From Podarcis liolepis (lineage: Eukaryota): a stretch of 64,000 nt of DNA. Below, in pieces: positions 2,916 to 62,908 of the stretch. A model generated the notes under the pieces. It was given only the letters and a program-made list of their open reading frames with translations, was not told the DNA's origin and made no database searches. The translations under genes were made by a program, and so were the position numbers. The stretch is taken from assembly GCA_965112155.1 (NCBI GenBank), contig OZ218101.1; one strand, 5' to 3'. How positions within the stretch are numbered: the stretch's first letter is position 1; every line of letters begins with the position of its first letter.

Positions 2916-3602
2916 CCGTATTTTTTGCTCCATAGGGCACACCAGACCATAGGGCGCACCTAGGTTTTTTGGGGGGGTGGGGAATAAAGAATCCCCCCCC
3001 CAGCCCCAAAGAGCAAAGAAGCCAAGACAGCCAGCGGGATTCATCCCGCTGGCTGTCTTGGCTTCCTCTTTAGCTACACACAACCTCTCCAGCCGGGAGA
3101 ATCTGTGTGTGGCTTTGTTTTTAGCCGCGGGGCTGGGGCGGGGGAAGCCCGAGCTTCCCCTGCCCCCAGCCCCCAGAACAGGTCCGGGAGCAGAGGCAAG
3201 GTTGCGCAGCCTTGCCGCCGCTCCCGGAGCTTGCAGGCTGGGCGAGCACTCCGAAGGTTTGCGGATAGCTGCTTGAAGCCCAGGGAGCGCAGTGGGAGTT
3301 GGCACTGCGCTCCCCGGGCTGCAGGCTGCTATCTGCAAGCCTTTGGAGCCTGCGGGCATTCCCGCTGGGCTCCGAAGGCTTGCGGATAGGTGCCTGAAGC
3401 CTGGGGTGCGCAGTGCTGCGCTCCCCGGGCTTCGGGCTCCAGGCTGCTATCCGCAAGCCTTCGGAGCCCGCGGGCATTCCCGCAGCACTCCGAAGGCTTG
3501 CGGATAGCTTCCTGAAGCCTGCATTCGCTCCATAGGACGCACACACATTTCCCCTTCATTTTTTGAGGGGAAAAAGTGAGTCCTATAGAGCGAAAAATAC
3601 AG
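2916..3602. mobile_element. Non-autonomous Tc1-mariner/pogo (Tc2-like) MITE, long form
   Basis: TA|CCGTATTTTTTGCTCCATAGG ... CCTATAGAGCGAAAAATACAG|TA terminal inverted repeats with TA target duplication; same ends as 62527-62784. Confidence 0.85.
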
Positions 3603-22637: not shown

Positions 22638-23388
22638 GTTGATACAGTTAAACGCTTGCTAATTAAAAAGTTGCCCCCAGTTCTTGCCATCCAACTAAAA
22701 CGATTTGACTATGACTGGGAAAGGGAATGTGCAATCAAGTTCAATGACTATTTTGAATTTCCGCGAGAGTTGGACATGGAACCTTATACAGTGGCAGGAG
22801 TAGCTAAACTAGAAGGGGATGATGTAAATCCTGAAAATCAGCTGATACAGAATGAGCAGTCTGAAAATGAACATTCTGGAAGTACTAAATACAGACTTGT
22901 TGGTGTATTGGTGCACAGTGGTCAAGCCAGTGGTGGACATTACTACTCTTACATAATTCAGAGAAATGGTGGAGATGGTGAGAAAAACAGGTGGTATAAA
23001 TTTGATGATGGTGACGTAACAGAATGCAAAATGGATGATGATGAAGAAATGAAAAATCAGTGTTTTGGTGGAGAGTACATGGGAGAAGTATTTGACCATA
23101 TGATGAAGCGCATGTCTTACAGACGTCAGAAGAGGTGGTGGAATGCTTACATTCTCTTTTATGAACGCATGGACACAGTAGACAGAGACAATGAACTAAT
23201 AAAATATATTTCAGAACTTACAATGACCACTAAACCCCATCAAATTAAAATGCCATCTGCCATTGAGCGAAGTGTACGGAAGCAAAATGTCCAGTTCATG
23301 CATAACCGAATGCAGTACAGCCTAGAATATTTCCAGTTCATAAAGAAATTACTGACTTGCAACAGTGTCTATCTAAATCCTCCTCCAG
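22638..23388 (+). CDS. USP9X: USP9X exon ~35, USP His box
   Basis: ccttag|GTTGAT...CCTCCAG|gttagt; [14 protein letters not shown] (His codon 22938-22940) and WYKFDD. Confidence 0.97.
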
Positions 23389-23943
23389 GTTAGTGTTTGG
23401 ATATTTATAATATATTTTGACAAGAGGTAGTGAAAGTACATAGCTTTTAACATTTCTCATATTTTTGTGTATCATTTTAAACATTACAAATTTGGATAAA
23501 AGACTATTATTCCTCAGGCATTTTCTAATATGTAAGAGTGATAGAAAAGACAAGGTTGCTGTTTCCTTGGTATTAAGCATTATTTACATTTGCTTAAAAA
23601 ACGTATTTGGCCGATAAATGCAACAAAAAAGATACTGGTGTCTAACTGAAGTGCTGTGGTCTGTAAGTCCAACCGTTTTATAGATCACAAGAAAAAATGT
23701 TTAGCAATGCTGGCTGACAACTTGAGTACTGAATTCTCTTAAATATCTTTCCTGGTTTTTAAAAAATAAAATTTATATACCACTTAATATAAAAAGAAAT
23801 CTCTGAGAGGTTTACATAAAATATAATAATTTTCTAATAATTTAAGATTTATATTGAGAGTCAGGTTGACAAACAACTCAGAATAATCTGTTGTATCACT
23901 TTCAAATAAATGTCTTAACATTTTGTCTTCTGTTTTTCTTTAG

Positions 23944-29650: not shown

Positions 29651-29863
29651 AGTAATGGAGATTTGAAGAGAAAGTGGACCTGGGCAGTAGAGTGGCTTGG
29701 AGATGAGCTTGAACGTAGGCCATACACTGGCAATCCACAATATACATATAACAATTGGTCTCCTCCGGTCCAGAGTAATGAAACATCAAATGGCTACTTC
29801 CTAGAGAGATCACACAGTGCAAGAATGACCCTTGCAAAAGCTTGTGAGCTGTGCCCAGAGGAG
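29651..29863 (+). CDS. USP9X: USP9X exon ~43
   Basis: tttcag|AGTAAT...GAGGAG|gtaagg; [25 protein letters not shown]. Confidence 0.95.
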
Positions 29864-30560
29864 GTAAGGAGTGAATTTACAACTAACGTTGCTTTGGCAT
29901 TCTTTGGAAGACAAACAACTTGTTTCATAAAATTCCTGATAGAAATATATGTTAGTTACATAGTTGAAATGCTAGCTGGCACTATAAGATTTATGAGTTG
30001 TTTCTAGCTTAGTGAGACTTTGGAACTCATAAGTAGGCAGGAGTTAAGTCCTCCACTGTACCAAGTGCCCCCAGTTATCACTGTGAGAGGCAAGGGAGAC
30101 TGAGCACTCCTCTGTCCACAGCCTCCAAACCTGTAGTTCTTAATATAGCAGCATCTACTTCTGATAGCTGTTACATAGTATAGGATTTAGAGAGGTGCCT
30201 GCAGAAGGGGTTGGCAGAAGCTGAATTTCTTTCTTGTTCCTTCTCAAAAGGAGCTTCTTCCAAGTGTCTGGGTATTCTGATTCATTTGGGGTGGGAGAAT
30301 CTGCCCAGATTTTTATTTTGGAGTTCCTCCCTTATGCTCCATGTCATAGCCAACCATATATCAGGGTTGCCCAAACCCTTAAAAGAGGCTGGGATAGTGG
30401 GCAGTTATGTGATGGAAGCGGCAGGGTAATCAGCTTCCACCCACACATTCTGCAGGAATTTCTCTGGGTCCAATCAATTGCCATACAAAAATAAGGGCAA
30501 GGAATTTAAATGTGAAAAGTAGTTTTATTTTTTGTTTTAATGGACAATTTTCATTTTTAG

Positions 30561-30656
30561 GAACCAGATGACCCAGATGCCCCTGATGAGCATGAGTCCT
30601 CTCCACCAGAAGATGCTCCATTGTATCCCCATTCGCCTGGTTCCCAGTATCAACAG
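30561..30656 (+). CDS. USP9X: USP9X exon ~44
   Basis: ttttag|GAACCA...CAACAG|gtaagc; [32 protein letters not shown]. Confidence 0.95.
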
Positions 30657-32022
30657 GTAAGCAGAGAATTATCTTTAAAACATGTCAATTCATTTTGGTA
30701 TCCTTTGAACTTTTTGCCTCAGCTTTTAAAAAACATATTGCCAGTTTTATTCCTTTTAGGACAAGGATAACTGTTTCACAAGAACATCATAGAATGTGAT
30801 TCAGGTAGACAGGCTCTTCCAGCAAAGTGTAATGTGCAGGCAGGTTTTTTGTTTTAAGTATCTTGTGAATGCCCTCACAGACAACTATTATATGGGAACA
30901 ATTATCTAACTTTTTTCTCTGTGAGCCAGCAAGCCAACTTGAATCAACTCACAGGTGCATCCAGAGAAAAACTAAATTCCCCCAATATGACATGTCCATT
31001 GATGCTTTGAAGGCCACTTTAGAAAACAACCTATACATTGTAAAATGCCTAAAATTTCACTTACGTTTTGCACCCAGTGATCTGCTAATAGAAGTTTCTG
31101 AACCAGCATTGAAGTCTGATTCTGCCCTGCTATAGTTCATGTATAACACCATGTGACCTTAAGTTGCATGTATGTACATCTCTTAAAAGTTAAATGCCTT
31201 TGTAAATGTAGTGCTAACTCCAGAAAGCTAAAATTGTAATTATCTTGCATTACCTTCGTAACTCATACATAACCAGTATTTGTTCCCTTTCCTTTCCTAA
31301 ATAATTAATTCTATATCCTTAATCTGTTAATTTCCTTTCCTGCTCATTTTCCTTCATCTTGCTTTCTTTATCGATGTGTTCAGCAGAGCAGTTGGTAAGT
31401 GATATAGACCCAATCTCCTCAAAGTTGAAACACGTTTAACCACCAGCTCCCTTATTTGTTAGTGTGTGGTGTCTTCACTTTCTCACAAGAGCTGGCTTTT
31501 TTCACCTGCTAACATGCACAATGGCTATATTTTAAGTCCAATTTTAGCTTCATAGTTGACCCAACTTCACATTACACAAAGGTACACGAATGTTTTACAT
31601 CTGCCAGTTTAGGTGTGTTAACAGTTAAAACAAACATATTTGATGATGATCACCTCAAGTCATTTTATTAAGTTTGACACAAGAAATATACTGTCCCTTT
31701 GGAAGAAAGGCCATTCACAATTATCACTTCCTGTTTCTGTGTACTAATTAAAACTTTCCTCCCCACCATTCCATTTCTGAAGATTTGTTATGAGGACCTT
31801 CACATAAAGCTTCAGCTTTTGCATGAAGTTGGAATTAATTAACTGTAACCTTGACCTTTCAATTTCAGTGCAAATTTATCTGTTCTATTTTTAGTTGGCG
31901 GTAAGTGTGAGTAGCTCTCTAGTTGTAATTTAAAAATATAAATTATTGCTTGCCCAGTTCCCTGAGCTACTTCTTTGGGGAAATATAGAAGTTATTCTTA
32001 ACATGTGTTTTGTCTCTTCCAG

Positions 32023-32157
32023 AATAACCATGTGCATGGACAACCATATACTGGCCCAGCAGCACATCATATGAACAACCCTCAGCGAACTGGCCAACGA
32101 GCACAAGAAAATTATGAAGGCAGTGAAGAGGTTTCACCGCCTCAGACGAAAGAATAG
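32023..32157 (+). CDS. USP9X: USP9X terminal coding exon ~45
   Basis: ttccag|AATAACCAT...ACGAAAGAATAG; [22 protein letters not shown]...PPQTKE*. Confidence 0.95.
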
Positions 32158-33780
32158 TGGAAATGCACATAATTAACTTGCCCCATCAAGACTGTGCACC
32201 CAGGCCTTACAGTCCAACTTTTCTCTGTGTCTGGNNNNNNNNNNNNNNNNNNNNNNNNNNNNNNNNNNNNNNNNNNNNNNNNNNNNNNNNNNNNNNNNNN
32301 NNNNNNNNNNNNNNNNNNNNNNNNNNNNNNNNNNNNNNNNNNNNNNNNNNNNNNNNNNNNNNNNNNNNNNNNNNNNNNNNNNNNNNNNNNNNNNNNNNNN
32401 NNNNNNNNNNNNNNNNNNNNNNATTCTTAAGCAAGAAACATTTTTTTGTCTTGATGAGACTCACAGATCTACAACAATTAATTTCTTGATATATCCGCTG
32501 CGCTCTACAACCAGTGTTGCCTGCCTAATGGCAGTTGGATCAACTTCTTTCCCCAAAAAAGTAAGCCTCTCCATGTCAACCAGAAAAATAGTTTCATGTT
32601 AATTCTTTGCCACTGGAGTCAATTTTACTATGAGCAACGTAATGACTGGTAACCTTTTAATTATTTGGTTGATGTGGAAAATTGGTGATGTAACATTGTT
32701 TCTAGGTCTTTTTTCATTGCCTTTTTCATTCTGGTATTAGGTTAATCACTTTGAAGCTATAGTTAAGCTGTAACATTTAGCATGGCTTCACACCAGGTTA
32801 GTGTAGCCAGTGAGGAAAGAAAAATTACAGTTGTCCCAGAGTGACAACTGTGTTGTTCAGAGCCTATTCTTCTGCCACCTAGAATATAAAACAGGGAGGG
32901 GAGGGTTGGGCAATGTGACAAACAGGTGGTTTTCAGTTGCACATATGTTCCTCACATCTGATGTTTGACAGTTTTGTCTCTGGGTGGGATAAAAGAACAC
33001 TTAGTTTTCAGTAATAGGAAATTAAAAGATTTAAAACAAATATGCAAATTTTTGCTATGCCAGGATGCCTGGAGCATAATAGACTGTATTTGGTGTGCTT
33101 GTTTTGTTTCTTTGGTAGAGCTTATTTGATAAACTTCTAACACTTTCCTTTCTACTGCATTGCAGTGAAGTGGAAGTCAACAAAATCACACAATACTTGT
33201 GAGTGCCACTGCACCAAGTTAACTTGCTGGTTTTCTGCTCGTTCACAATTCTACTTGAAAACAAGAATTGAATCTTAGCTCTTTGTCCATGATAAGAGAA
33301 ATCGAAACCTTAGAAGCAGAGATTGATTATTAAAAAAACAAACAAACTACTGGTTAGTCAAATACAAAACTGAGGTATCTCTATTCCAGAGTAAACATTT
33401 GTTTAAGGACTTCAAGGAAGACATCAGTAAATACTGTATTTAAATTAAAATTGGTAACTTGAATGTGTGTAATTATTTTGGAATCTGTCGAAAAACCAAA
33501 TACCCCTGCAAAACAGATACAGCCCACCCTATACTATTTAAATATTTGCTGTTTTATTTTATAGAAATTATTTTGCTGAATTCACAAATAGAATTTGATT
33601 TAAGAAGACCATTTTTGTCCTGTGGTGTGTGTGTGGTTTTTTTTTTTTAAACAGACTGCACAGGTAGTTGAATTCTGTGCACTATACCGAATTCTGGAAC
33701 TAAAGTCGCATTGAGAATTGGTGAACAGAAATTTGACCCTTGACAAGAATAAAAAAGGAAAACTGTAATAGTTTCTTAAT
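32158..33780 (+). other. USP9X: USP9X 3' UTR (proximal form; may extend to about 35300)
   Basis: Follows the stop codon; AU-rich, no repeats recognised; AATAAA at 33748-33753 and further AATAAA near 35147 and 35259. Confidence 0.7.
32235..32422. other. Assembly gap (188 N)
   Basis: Run of N. Confidence 1.
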
Positions 33781-36340
33781 GTGACTATCTTGTACTTTTT
33801 GTATGTTTTATATATACATATATATTTAATGAGCACAAGCTTGAAGGTATTTTATACAATTGAGTTAATACAAAAATGCTGCTTATCAAACTGAGGATTT
33901 ATAGTTGAACAAAGTGAGAAACTCACAAGTGCGTTCTTTTGCATTTAGTGTAATAAGATAGTCTTAAACCATTTTTAAATATTCTATGTAGCAGCGATCA
34001 CTTTACCCTTCCAGATTTTCTCTAGTATTCATGTTAATTGTTATGTTTCTAACAGCAGTTAATTGGATTGGTTGACAACGTTTGAGTGAAACATTCCCCA
34101 TGTACGTGGGTATGTTTAGTGTTGACTTAAATCAAAATATTAGCCTGTTTTGTATTAGAGCTGCAACAGTTCATATTTCCTTAGACCAGTAATTATTGTT
34201 AAAAATGTTTTTTCAAAGACTATCTTTCTATACAGGAACATGGAACTTGTTACTTTGGCCTTGGAAAAATGATTAGTGTCAAGTGATTGTGAAAATACTT
34301 TTTCTTTTTCTTTCTTTTTTAAACTTACTTTCACAAGGCTATGACAAAACCCTCCTGGAGATAGTTTTCAGACAACTACTTAGGAGGTATTGCGGGTTAT
34401 CTTTTCCCCCTGGAAGAGAGACTCCTGAGACTATTGCCTCTTTAAAATTAATGTGTAGCAGAAACCTGAAAAATCATTTTCTTCCTTCTTGGCAAAACGT
34501 CTCATTTATTCATTTTAAGTGAAAATGTTCTGAATAATAATTAATGCATGCTTCTGTCAGAGTTTTGGCAGCAGTCACTTTAAAGCTGTAATGTAATACC
34601 TCAATATGAATGGCACACATTAAAACAAGTCCTCAAAGTGCCTAAAGGTTTAATTTTACTCTTCTGCTAATTATTGAATCCTAATTTTTGTTTGTAACAG
34701 CTAATGGGAAATCCCTGTCTTCCATAAAAGCAATCCATCCAACAGTAATCCTACATTTTTCCTAATCATTTGACATTAAATATATAGAAACTGATCACCC
34801 GTAGGAAAAGCTTTTAGTGTGTTTGTATCAGACTGTGTTTGTGTAAATAGCTTCCTTTGCTTTACCAGAAGCAGTTCTTTGTGCAAATGAATTTTTGCCA
34901 CTGACTTCAGTGAGGAAACCTTAACGTTCTGTTTTTGTGTTAGCGCTGCTAAATCACTCTAGTTACGGAGGTATGCATGGCTACCAACTTGCTGGGTCTT
35001 CATTACATATTGTCACTTTGGGAGAGCTTTTGAATGCTGAAAGTAATGGGAGCCTCAGTTTTCATTTAAAAACTAATAGATTTTAGTGGTTGTGGAAACA
35101 AAAGTATGTCTGCAGTGTCCACTGAAGATTCAAAAAGCAAAAGAGAAATAAAAAGAATCCAAAATGGAATTTTAAACCTCATGATTCTTAAGCCATGTTA
35201 TGTCTTTTTAAAAGGACCATTAATTTTAAAGAATTAGCTTTAGAAACACAAATGTAATGAATAAATTTGCTTCCCAGTTGGATTTAAGTTGTAACTAGCA
35301 AACCTTTTCCAGGCAGTGTATTAAACTCTGGGTGTCATTAATTGATGTCATTACTAAATTACAAAGGAAAGGAAAGAGATGGGAGTAGAATAAGTATGCT
35401 GTTGTTCCTTTAGCTACACATTTGTATAGAAGCGAATGTTCATCACCACAGTGGTATTATCGCAAAGTGCAATTCCATTTTGAACTGAATGCAAAATATT
35501 AATTTGTTGTGGTGTCCATCTTTTCTATAAGGATGTTTCCTAAGTGTTTCCTTCATACCTCCCTTGCATTTCAGTGCAGCTTTCCTGGGACAATTTTCAT
35601 AAGTTGTACCAAGAGAATTCCCCCCCCCCAAAAAAAGCTCTGTATTATTCATAAACATGCTGGTAACACTAGCAAATGTTATATGGCTAAACATTTACAT
35701 TTGTTTTTCTTTCTCTGTTAAGCAAGCTATGGTAGTATGTATTTTTTTAAAAAAAATCTTCCCAAAAAGGAAAATGTAGGATGCTAGAGAAGGTTATAGA
35801 GAAAAACAATTGTGGGGAAAAACAAGCACTCTTATTGAATGGAGATTATGGAAGATAACAGAATATTGTGGCTGGCATAGTAGCGGCTCATCATGACTGT
35901 GGATGCATCACCTCATTTACAGTAGATTAGTAGATCTTAGGAACCACTCATTAAAGGAAATGGGCAGAAAAGAACCTCCCTGCTCTCCCTCCTAAATCTC
36001 CAAATCACCTTTTCTGAGGGTTGAAAATCCTGGGTGGGTTATGACCTTGGGAGCTAGGGGAAAGGGGAGAATTGGCCAAGATTTTGAAGCGTCTTCAGCA
36101 AAGATGCACTTGCACAAGGTTCTGCTGTCTGAGTTGGGACAATCTCCCCATCCCACTGTGCCATAGCCCACCCCTCAAGAAACCCTCAGAAAAGGGTGTT
36201 GGACAGTGTAGGGAGAAGGACAATCCCCTTTTGTTGTTTTCCTTCCATGAGCAATTCTTAGGATCCAGCCCAGTCCTTTTCAGGGAAGCCCATTCACACA
36301 TGTGGAAATAAGCTGCCATGTGTTAATCACACACACTGCT

Positions 36341-44865: not shown

Positions 44866-46844
44866 CTGGAAGATTTTTTGCAAGAGATTTCCCCTGTTAT
44901 TATTTTCCAAAAACAGTATTAGCGCTTTAACTGTTCCCATTAAACATGGTTAGTTATGCTCTTTGTAGGCCTTCCAAGTGCTCAGCACTAATAGTAGCAA
45001 TAGACAATGTTTACCAAATTATTTCATTCGAAACTTTCCATTTGCTTTGCTTCTGGGAAATGCTTTCATATTGTCTCACAGTTCACTTTGGTAAAAATAT
45101 TTGAACCTTCCATATTTAGTACTGTGATCAGACTTCTAAATAAGACTGCAGCACTGAGGATGCTAATGTGTGCCCTTGAGGCTGCCCACAAGTCTCTTAG
45201 ACTCTGTTATAAGGTGGCAGGGGTGGCAATTATTATTTGTATACTGTCTTATACCCATAGATCTCAGAACACAGCCACCACCTCCCACATCAAGGCTAAA
45301 GGAAGAAGTGGTAGGACCTTTCCCACTCACTCTTTCAGCACTATGTGCATTCTAAGGCTCAGGTTGGCCCCTGATCAGAAGCAGAGTGACTTGTGAGGGT
45401 AAGTAGGGAAAGTGAAGCAATCTAGCCTGGAGGAAGAAAAATAAGACTGAAAAGTGAAGTCCGAAGACAATGAATTAAGAAACCTGAGTAAATGTAAATG
45501 TCTTGAAATTAAAAGTTTTTCCTACAGGTTCTCTTACCACCATATTATCACATACTGCATCAGTCTCCATTGAATGAACGTCACATCTAGTACTTTCTAG
45601 TGTCACCATGGTGCAGAAACATGGATTCAAAACACAGAACCCCATTGTTTATAGGGACTCCATCAAAACCATTATCTATCCACACATAACCAGATCACAG
45701 ATGTATTCTGTGATTTTGTTGTCGTACTATGTAAAAATCATGATTCATGCAATGGATCAATGATTTCCCGGTGCTGGCAAGCAATGATTCTGTGAAGTCT
45801 ACCTTTTTAAGCTAAAATTTGACAATGCTTGGGGGGGGGGGGAGACCATGTAAAACCATGCAGATTCAAGAGGATCTGTTTTAATTCTGCTGAATGATTT
45901 TATCCAGACCACCTGGAAAAGTGGAAGTTTGTCTATGTTCGCTTTTTGGGTGGGCAGGAAAAAAGCGACCAGAGGAAGTAATGTCCATGGCACTCTCAAA
46001 ATTCCAAATTTGTGTAATCCACAAAGAAAAGCTAAAAGTGGAATATTATGTGATTACCTGTAGCTGTATTATATTTATGCTGTTATGATTGTTATTAGTT
46101 ATACACTTTCCCGTTTCTGTATATTTCTTCATTATTGTATATTTGGATAATTTGCAGTAAACCTTTTTTTTTTAAATTCCAAATGTGCCCAGGGCAAAAA
46201 AAGAGGGAAAAAAATAAGAGGTTGGTGACCACTGCTGTGGCAACACAGTATTAAATAATGACACAGAACACATTTTGTGCAATGTCATTTTTAAAGACTG
46301 GATTCTAATTTCTTAAGTGCTTACAAGCAGCTATAGTGACAAATACCAAGACACCAATAAGAATGCAACAATGTCAGGGGCTTAATCACCTTCTCATTCT
46401 TGCAATGCAATATGCCCATTTGTCTATCAACAATGCCCTTCTGCTGTCAACAGAGACTAAAGAGGTCAGACTCAATGCAAAATAATATATGCTTTAAAAA
46501 ATTCTCTTTTAAGACACCCAGCTGCCAACTCAAAGTCACAATTATTCAATAAAGAACATAAAAGACTCCCCAATGAATTTGCTTGACTAGACAGTTGGAA
46601 AATCTTAAGCTCCAAATAATCAGTCATGGTCATGTTCTTCTCTTTCACTACAGGCCTTAAATTAGTATAAGAAAGTTAGTAAAATGGTGATATCATGGAT
46701 TGCTGTTGTAGTAAATAGCCAATTCGGTTGAGTTTTGCAGAAAACCTCCTCCATGTTAAGCCCTTTTTCGAAGTGTTATTAGTTGGAAGCGCCAGAACAC
46801 CTCTACAATCCAGATTCTGCAAGTACTGCAGTGTCCTTAAACTA

Positions 46845-47150
<306 letters not shown>

Positions 47151-62484: not shown

Positions 62485-62908
62485 AACATAGGAAGCTGCC
62501 TTATACTGAGTCAGACCATTGATCTACCGTATTTTTCCCTCTATAAGATGCACTAGACCACAAGACGCACCTAGTTTTTGGAGGAGGAAAACAAAACAAA
62601 CAAATTCTGAATCTCAGAAGCCAGAACAGCAAGAGGGATCGCTGTGCAGTGAAAGCAGCAATCCCTCTTGCTGTTCTGGCTTCTGGGATAGCTGCGCAGC
62701 CTGCATTCGCTCCATAAGACGCACACACATTTCCCCTTACTTTTTAGGAAGGAAAAAGTGAGTCTTATAGAGCAAAAAATACGGTATTTAGCTCAGTGTT
62801 GTCACTTGCTAGCAAATGCTCTCCAGGATTTCCAGTCTTTCCTGGAGACGCCAGGGATTGAACCTGGGGACTTCTGCATGCAAAGCAGATGCTCTACCAT
62901 TAAGCTAC
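62485..62908 (-). mobile_element. Squam2-like SINE interrupted by a MITE
   Basis: Minus-strand head TAGCTTAATGGTAGAGCATCTGCTTTGCATGCAGAAG..GGTTCAATCCCTGG, tail GACTCAGTATAAGGCAGCTTCC; colinear with 19798-19990. Confidence 0.8.
62527..62784. mobile_element. Tc2/pogo-like MITE, short form
   Basis: TA|CCGTATTTTTCCCTCTATAAGA ... TCTTATAGAGCAAAAAATACGG|TA. Confidence 0.88.

Follow-up and report, generated by a model that had tools for sequence, protein, structure and literature searches.

The 64-kb window, by which we mean the whole stretch of DNA that was analysed, carries the 3' part of USP9X on its + strand, as read from the sequence. A domain search placed the Pfam UCH domain match in a large exon at 22656-23390, and the exon 43 peptide is 100% identical to proteins named "ubiquitin carboxyl-terminal hydrolase FAF-X". 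Brain development requires USP9X, a deubiquitinase sensitive to dosage. The end of its coding region is arranged as follows:

29651-29863, + strand: USP9X exon 43, with the donor GTAAGG.
30561-30656, + strand: USP9X exon 44, the penultimate coding exon, 32 codons (EPDD...SQYQQ), ending CAACAG.
30657-32022, + strand: the last USP9X intron, 1366 nt, phase 0.
32023-32157, + strand: the coding part of the last exon (exon 45), starting AATAAC, with 44 codons followed by TAG (32155-32157).

Exon 44 is in phase 0 at both ends and has the donor CAG/gtaagc. The original prediction for this locus had assumed a phase-0 last intron with a 44-residue tail encoded beyond it, and both assumptions are borne out by the ends of the two exons and by the codon count of exon 45. 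Just past the USP9X stop codon, the 3' UTR is interrupted by a run of N at 32236-32422.

For comparison, metagenome contigs were scanned with exon 43, which returned 30 loci, two of them informative. The first, L001, is a spliced bird-type cDNA contig in which the orthologous exons 44 and 45 are joined directly at a canonical junction, without the last intron. The second, L003, is a 44-kb genomic contig whose protein is also bird-type (SPPIQ, as in the Merops and Eurypyga models), and its USP9X exons lie at these positions:

L003 10001-10213: exon 43.
L003 10676-10771: exon 44.
L003 from 12231: exon 45.

Exon identity between the window and L003 is 82-91%, and the translation of exon 44 is common to the window, L003 and L001 without a difference. 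At the four-fold sites of exons 43 and 44, 14 of 43 positions differ between the window and L003 (K ~0.43). Past the N run, the USP9X 3' UTR (32423-34805) is 77% identical to L003 over ~2.5 kb; this is far above the identity of the introns and suggests heavy post-transcriptional constraint.

Inside the last intron, the original prediction had placed the motif ttcag/CAGAGCAGTTG/gtaagt at 31384-31394, preceded by a pyrimidine-rich stretch with TGC at 31341 and 31360. Direct reading recovered the motif at exactly that position, both TGC motifs, and an upstream stretch that is 76% pyrimidine. The features of the candidate are:

31276-31381, + strand: AG-free zone of 105 nt, 76% pyrimidine, with TGC at 31341-31343 and 31360-31362.
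31327-31331, + strand: branch-point-like TTAAT, predicted from consensus only, with its A 52 nt upstream of the acceptor AG.
31382-31383, + strand: putative microexon acceptor AG, the first AG after the tract, giving 11 nt.
31384-31394, + strand: candidate 11-nt cassette microexon CAGAGCAGTTG.
31382-31391, + strand: cluster of four AGs, giving exons of 11, 8, 6 or 3 nt.
31385-86, + strand: AG giving an 8-nt exon.
31387-88, + strand: AG forming a poor GAG acceptor, giving a 6-nt exon, CAGTTG, in frame.
31390-91, + strand: AG giving a 3-nt exon, TTG.
31395-31400, + strand: putative microexon donor GTAAGT, with G at -1, making seven consecutive consensus positions.

This donor is nearer to consensus than those of exon 43 (GTAAGG) and exon 44 (GTAAGC). 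The sequence marks of a cassette microexon (3-27 nt) are all present: an acceptor, a putative branch point, a pyrimidine tract and a GT donor, on the strand of the gene and within an intron. When the 11 nt are read in frame from exon 44 they give CAG AGC AGT TG, and the first base of exon 45, A, would turn their final TG into TGA. The result, Q-S-S-stop across the last junction, is the reading that had been proposed. Without use of the donor the reading frame would also stop at once, at TGG TAA within the donor itself.

Three AGs had been described at the acceptor, with exons of 11, 8 and 3 nt as their products. These three options hold; the count does not, as there are four AGs and the GAG adds a 6-nt option. 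The reading frame is kept only by the 6-nt and 3-nt options and is shifted by the 11-nt and 8-nt ones. Most conserved neural microexons keep the reading frame, and it could be argued on this ground that the microexon is real and that its main product is in frame, with TTG (+Leu) or CAGTTG (+Gln-Leu) inserted and the tail kept, as the AG cluster would permit. However, splicing normally selects the first AG that follows a long AG-free tract, and the more distal AGs are 3-8 nt farther along, one of them being a GAG; we consider a predominantly in-frame product very improbable. That 11 is not a multiple of three, unlike the length of most conserved neural microexons, counts against reading CAGAGCAGTTG as an 11-nt microexon.

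Vertebrate neural microexons are said to have been originally described by Irimia and by Raj, both in 2014. In this class, the pyrimidine content is highest 15-30 nt from the acceptor, the interval from branch point to acceptor contains UGC motifs, and the branch point is distal, its median distance being 45-47 nt in neural microexons as against 34 nt in other exons (PMC12871342). Upstream of CAGAGCAGTTG, the pyrimidine fraction is 0.875 at -15 to -30 and 0.55 at -5 to -15, UGC motifs lie at -24 and -43 from the acceptor, and purines interrupt the last 14 nt before the acceptor AG, a point that also weighs against the microexon reading. The putative branch point TTAAT sits in a conserved TTAATTTCC motif; in the L003 counterpart, the A of TTAAT is at -60 and that of a CTAAT at -65. 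The long tract with UGC and the strong donor, which the original prediction had presented as marks of neural microexons, match the features given in PMC12871342. In its length, strong donor, weak acceptor-proximal tract, UGC motifs, distal branch point and deep conservation of exon and flanks, the candidate resembles the microexons of 3-27 nt activated by SRRM3/SRRM4 (nSR100), a likeness in sequence features. The marks of that class found here are an extended region between branch point and acceptor, a distal pyrimidine tract and upstream UGC. Unlike most SRRM3/SRRM4 microexons, the candidate would shift the frame at its 11 nt, and at 8 nt as well, frame preservation being typical of the class and not strictly defining.

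Recursive splice sites (AG/GTAAGT) likewise have a strong donor close behind an acceptor. Unlike in those, 11 nt intervene here between AG and GTAAGT and no donor is rebuilt, and the intron is only 1366 nt (1.4 kb); a recursive splice site was rejected.

We counted all arrangements of the form AG-(3 to 27 nt)-GTRAGT on both strands of the window, with 32071-32132 masked. There were 110 such combinations on 70 donors, and the acceptor of the exon at 31384 ranked first among the 110 for upstream pyrimidines (0.775 over 40 nt, 0.76 over 100 nt). An AG-free zone of at least 100 nt precedes 17 of the 8620 AGs in the window, the microexon AG having 105 nt. When 75% pyrimidine or more is required in addition, only two AGs in the window are left. 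By chance, ~0.027 AGs of this kind per window would be expected to have GTRAGT 3-27 nt downstream. The arrangement is unusual, exceeding the chance expectation for 64 kb. Genome-wide, by extrapolation from the window, such coincidences would still number hundreds, the figure on which a chance pseudo-exon without function could be defended. Since that many are to be expected, the anatomy alone is not decisive, and the weight falls on conservation.

Sensitive BLAST against L003 over ~6.5 kb and eight introns found a single stretch of alignable intronic DNA, the other matches being exons and 3' UTR only. The conserved intronic features are:

31273-31630, + strand: conserved intronic block, seen by BLAST and alignment, corresponding to L003 11342-11687 and centred on the candidate exon.
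31461-31530, + strand: downstream conserved block, with 50 of 70 columns identical to L003.

The block in L003 lies ~0.7 kb from each flanking exon, which is the orthologous position; a transposon copy was rejected on this evidence. Across the 24-nt core, which starts at the acceptor, takes in the exon and reaches donor position +9, the window and L003 are identical at 24 of 24 positions, for which the probability is ~8e-5 at the four-fold-site rate. CAGAGCAGTTG itself is unchanged in L003 (11452-11462), as is the donor GTAAGT. Of the 60 nt upstream, 53 are identical, indels aside, with both TGC motifs at aligned positions and the TTAATTTCC motif kept too. The AG-free zone of L003 measures 113 nt and is again 76% pyrimidine, despite substitutions and a 7-nt insertion. 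Since exon 45 of L003 also starts AATAAC, the junction stop would be kept there. Conservation of the region around 31250-31450, which had been named as a check on the prediction, thus holds in this one species, the AG/GTAAGT pair being kept in L003.

A control was available in the same intron. The look-alike tttag/TTGGCG/gtaagt at 31895-31900, which would be in frame and add Leu-Ala, has no counterpart at the aligned position of L003, the only similar string being an unrelated AAAAAG/GTAAGTG elsewhere in that contig. It looks like a chance motif, and it shows that chance motifs are not conserved; a conserved candidate and a non-conserved look-alike here share one intron. With a core identical at every position and conserved flanks lying within otherwise unalignable introns, the explanation of CAGAGCAGTTG as a chance pseudo-exon is hardly credible to us.

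Conservation of this kind could also reflect a non-coding element acting at the DNA level, an enhancer for example, whose likeness to an exon is coincidental. The block reaches ~230 nt past the donor and includes the second conserved patch at 31461-31530, as such an element might. However, its identity is highest exactly over acceptor, exon and donor. A pyrimidine bias specific to one strand and an AG-free zone have also been kept through indels, and an enhancer has no need of either; we regard a DNA-level element as improbable. The patch at 31461-31530 is possibly a splicing enhancer or silencer. A structured RNA was likewise tried and rejected: there was no relevant Rfam match at gathering or permissive thresholds, and the two-sequence consensus fold, at -17.4 kcal/mol over 351 columns and with a single compensatory pair, was weak.

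Against this one comparison species, the exon and ~100 nt of its flanks are kept and the rest of the intron is not, and the pattern of constraint, with its peak on acceptor, exon and donor, is that of conserved alternative exons. That the conservation comes from a single species is a point against the microexon reading. The stretch is nonetheless very likely functional, a reading of the 11 bases that follows from the presence of all the sequence marks of a tiny exon together with their identity in a distant bird-type genome. A microexon prediction made from sequence only can, on this showing, be triaged by one cross-species alignment.

The few transcript and protein records inspected were canonical throughout. 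Besides the exon 44-45 junction of L001, the canonical ...QYQQNNHV... is present in all the relevant protein fragments and gene models that were examined (birds, a snake, mammals and fishes), which tells against the microexon reading. An isoform ending ...QQQSS was looked for in protein searches from exon 43 and from L001 to the end of exon 44, and among cluster members; these gave canonical tails only. Such searches have low power for minor isoforms, as 90%-identity clusters and assembly both hide them. The records show only that the canonical form exists and dominates them. The open reading frame of the conserved block of L003 gave no candidates as a protein query, and the exact 22-nt core had no match in bacterial and archaeal genomes, as expected. 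No alternative exon in the last USP9X intron was found in the literature, and VastDB, Ensembl or RefSeq isoforms may list it.

The uniformly canonical records would also be explained if the conserved stretch were an intronic splicing-regulatory decoy or pseudo-exon that tunes removal of the last intron and never or hardly enters mature mRNA, and the conserved splice-like signals fit that account equally. The candidate shares with decoy and poison exons its shortness, its high conservation together with its flanks, and the disruption of the frame on inclusion. Poison exons differ from the candidate in working through NMD, an outcome not to be expected at the last junction. The perfect conservation of all 11 exonic bases and of the donor to +9 goes beyond what a decoy needs, and the last intron is short (1.4 kb) with ordinary flanking splice sites. 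We judge a decoy to be rather unlikely, if still worth bearing in mind.

We favour, with a probability of roughly 60%, the reading of CAGAGCAGTTG with its flanks as a conserved, splicing-competent and regulated cassette microexon whose inclusion would build TGA across the last junction and yield a tail-less USP9X. The original interpretation is to this extent partly supported, on anatomy and on conservation. In the proposed mechanism, a distal branch point (~-52) would be followed by the long AG-free tract of pyrimidines and UGC and then by the acceptor at 31382-83; as the tract is free of AG, the first AG after it would serve as the acceptor. The strong donor GTAAGT, 11 nt after the acceptor, would then define an 11-nt exon. 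Skipping would give the canonical USP9X protein. Inclusion would shift the frame by +2, so that the exon's last TG and the first A of exon 45 form TGA, and the predicted product would end ...QYQQ-QSS, without the conserved 44-residue tail.

By a general rule, termination codons escape NMD when they lie in the last exon or within ~50-55 nt upstream of the final junction. By its coordinates the predicted stop falls at the last junction, a geometry insensitive to NMD, and by this rule the mRNA should escape; it is predicted not to be an NMD target. In that its stop would lie on the last junction, with no junction complex downstream, the candidate resembles 3'-end alternative exons that swap or remove a C-terminus. 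Unlike in other 3' exons that alter the C-terminus, the stop codon would be assembled from two exons (TG and A).

Inclusion would probably be regulated through the upstream UGC/UCUU-rich tract, where the candidate inputs are activation at UGC in the manner of SRRM3/4 and PTBP-mediated repression at the UCUU-rich sequence.

The USP9X C-terminal region binds DCX and SMURF1 (PMC6804943, PMC4427618). A truncating variant in the last exon of USP9X has been described in human X-linked intellectual disability (Homan 2014, as cited in PMC6804943 and PMC4427618). In what these two papers relate of it, neuronal rescue assays showed the variant to behave as a loss of function, and NMD is presumed to spare its mRNA (PMC6804943, PMC4427618). 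The candidate isoform is like this variant in its predicted loss of the extreme C-terminus from a presumed NMD-escaping mRNA, and unlike it in that the variant is a human mutation and adds aberrant residues. The position of the variant is reportedly Gln2525. A broader proposal can be framed, in which the microexon would be a switch of ancient origin, regulated by tissue (neural, muscle or both, under SRRM3/4 and PTBP) and present in amniotes including mammals, and would make a stable tail-less USP9X with altered partner binding or localisation, a physiological counterpart of the disease-linked C-terminal truncation. Under this proposal PTBP repression of the exon could be one arm of a feedback loop, USP9X being reported to stabilise PTBP1 (PMC13121642). 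We hold this extended proposal to be speculative and, on present evidence, doubtful. If the microexon is real, it would offer a natural handle on the function of the conserved 44-residue tail, and variants in the microexon or its tract would be a new type of event to screen for in patients.

Several further features of the window were observed. Within the conserved block downstream of the microexon, a conserved CTAAC at 31509-31513 has, ~30 nt further on in both species, a run of pyrimidines and then an AG (AG at 31546-47 in the window, ...tttctccacag in L003), and the stretch 31509-31547 could be a second acceptor. At exon 43, the match to L003 extends ~15 nt past the donor (29864-29878), mammal-type open reading frames continue across this donor into a conserved EEVKKATSVQQIEMEE..., and VKK is inserted at the exon 43 junction in a wombat model; together these observations point to a possible alternative donor downstream of exon 43.

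Downstream of USP9X, an open frame of ~100 codons at 46842-47147 (- strand) matches Pfam Ribosomal_L2_C (E 1e-23) and is RPL8-like; the alternatives are an RPL8 gene exon and a processed copy. A tRNA-like match of 49 bits lies at 62850-62908 (- strand), beside a repeated element whose open frames at 3121-3546 and 62501-62728 (- strand) begin with the same residues. The repeated element is probably a tRNA-derived SINE family.
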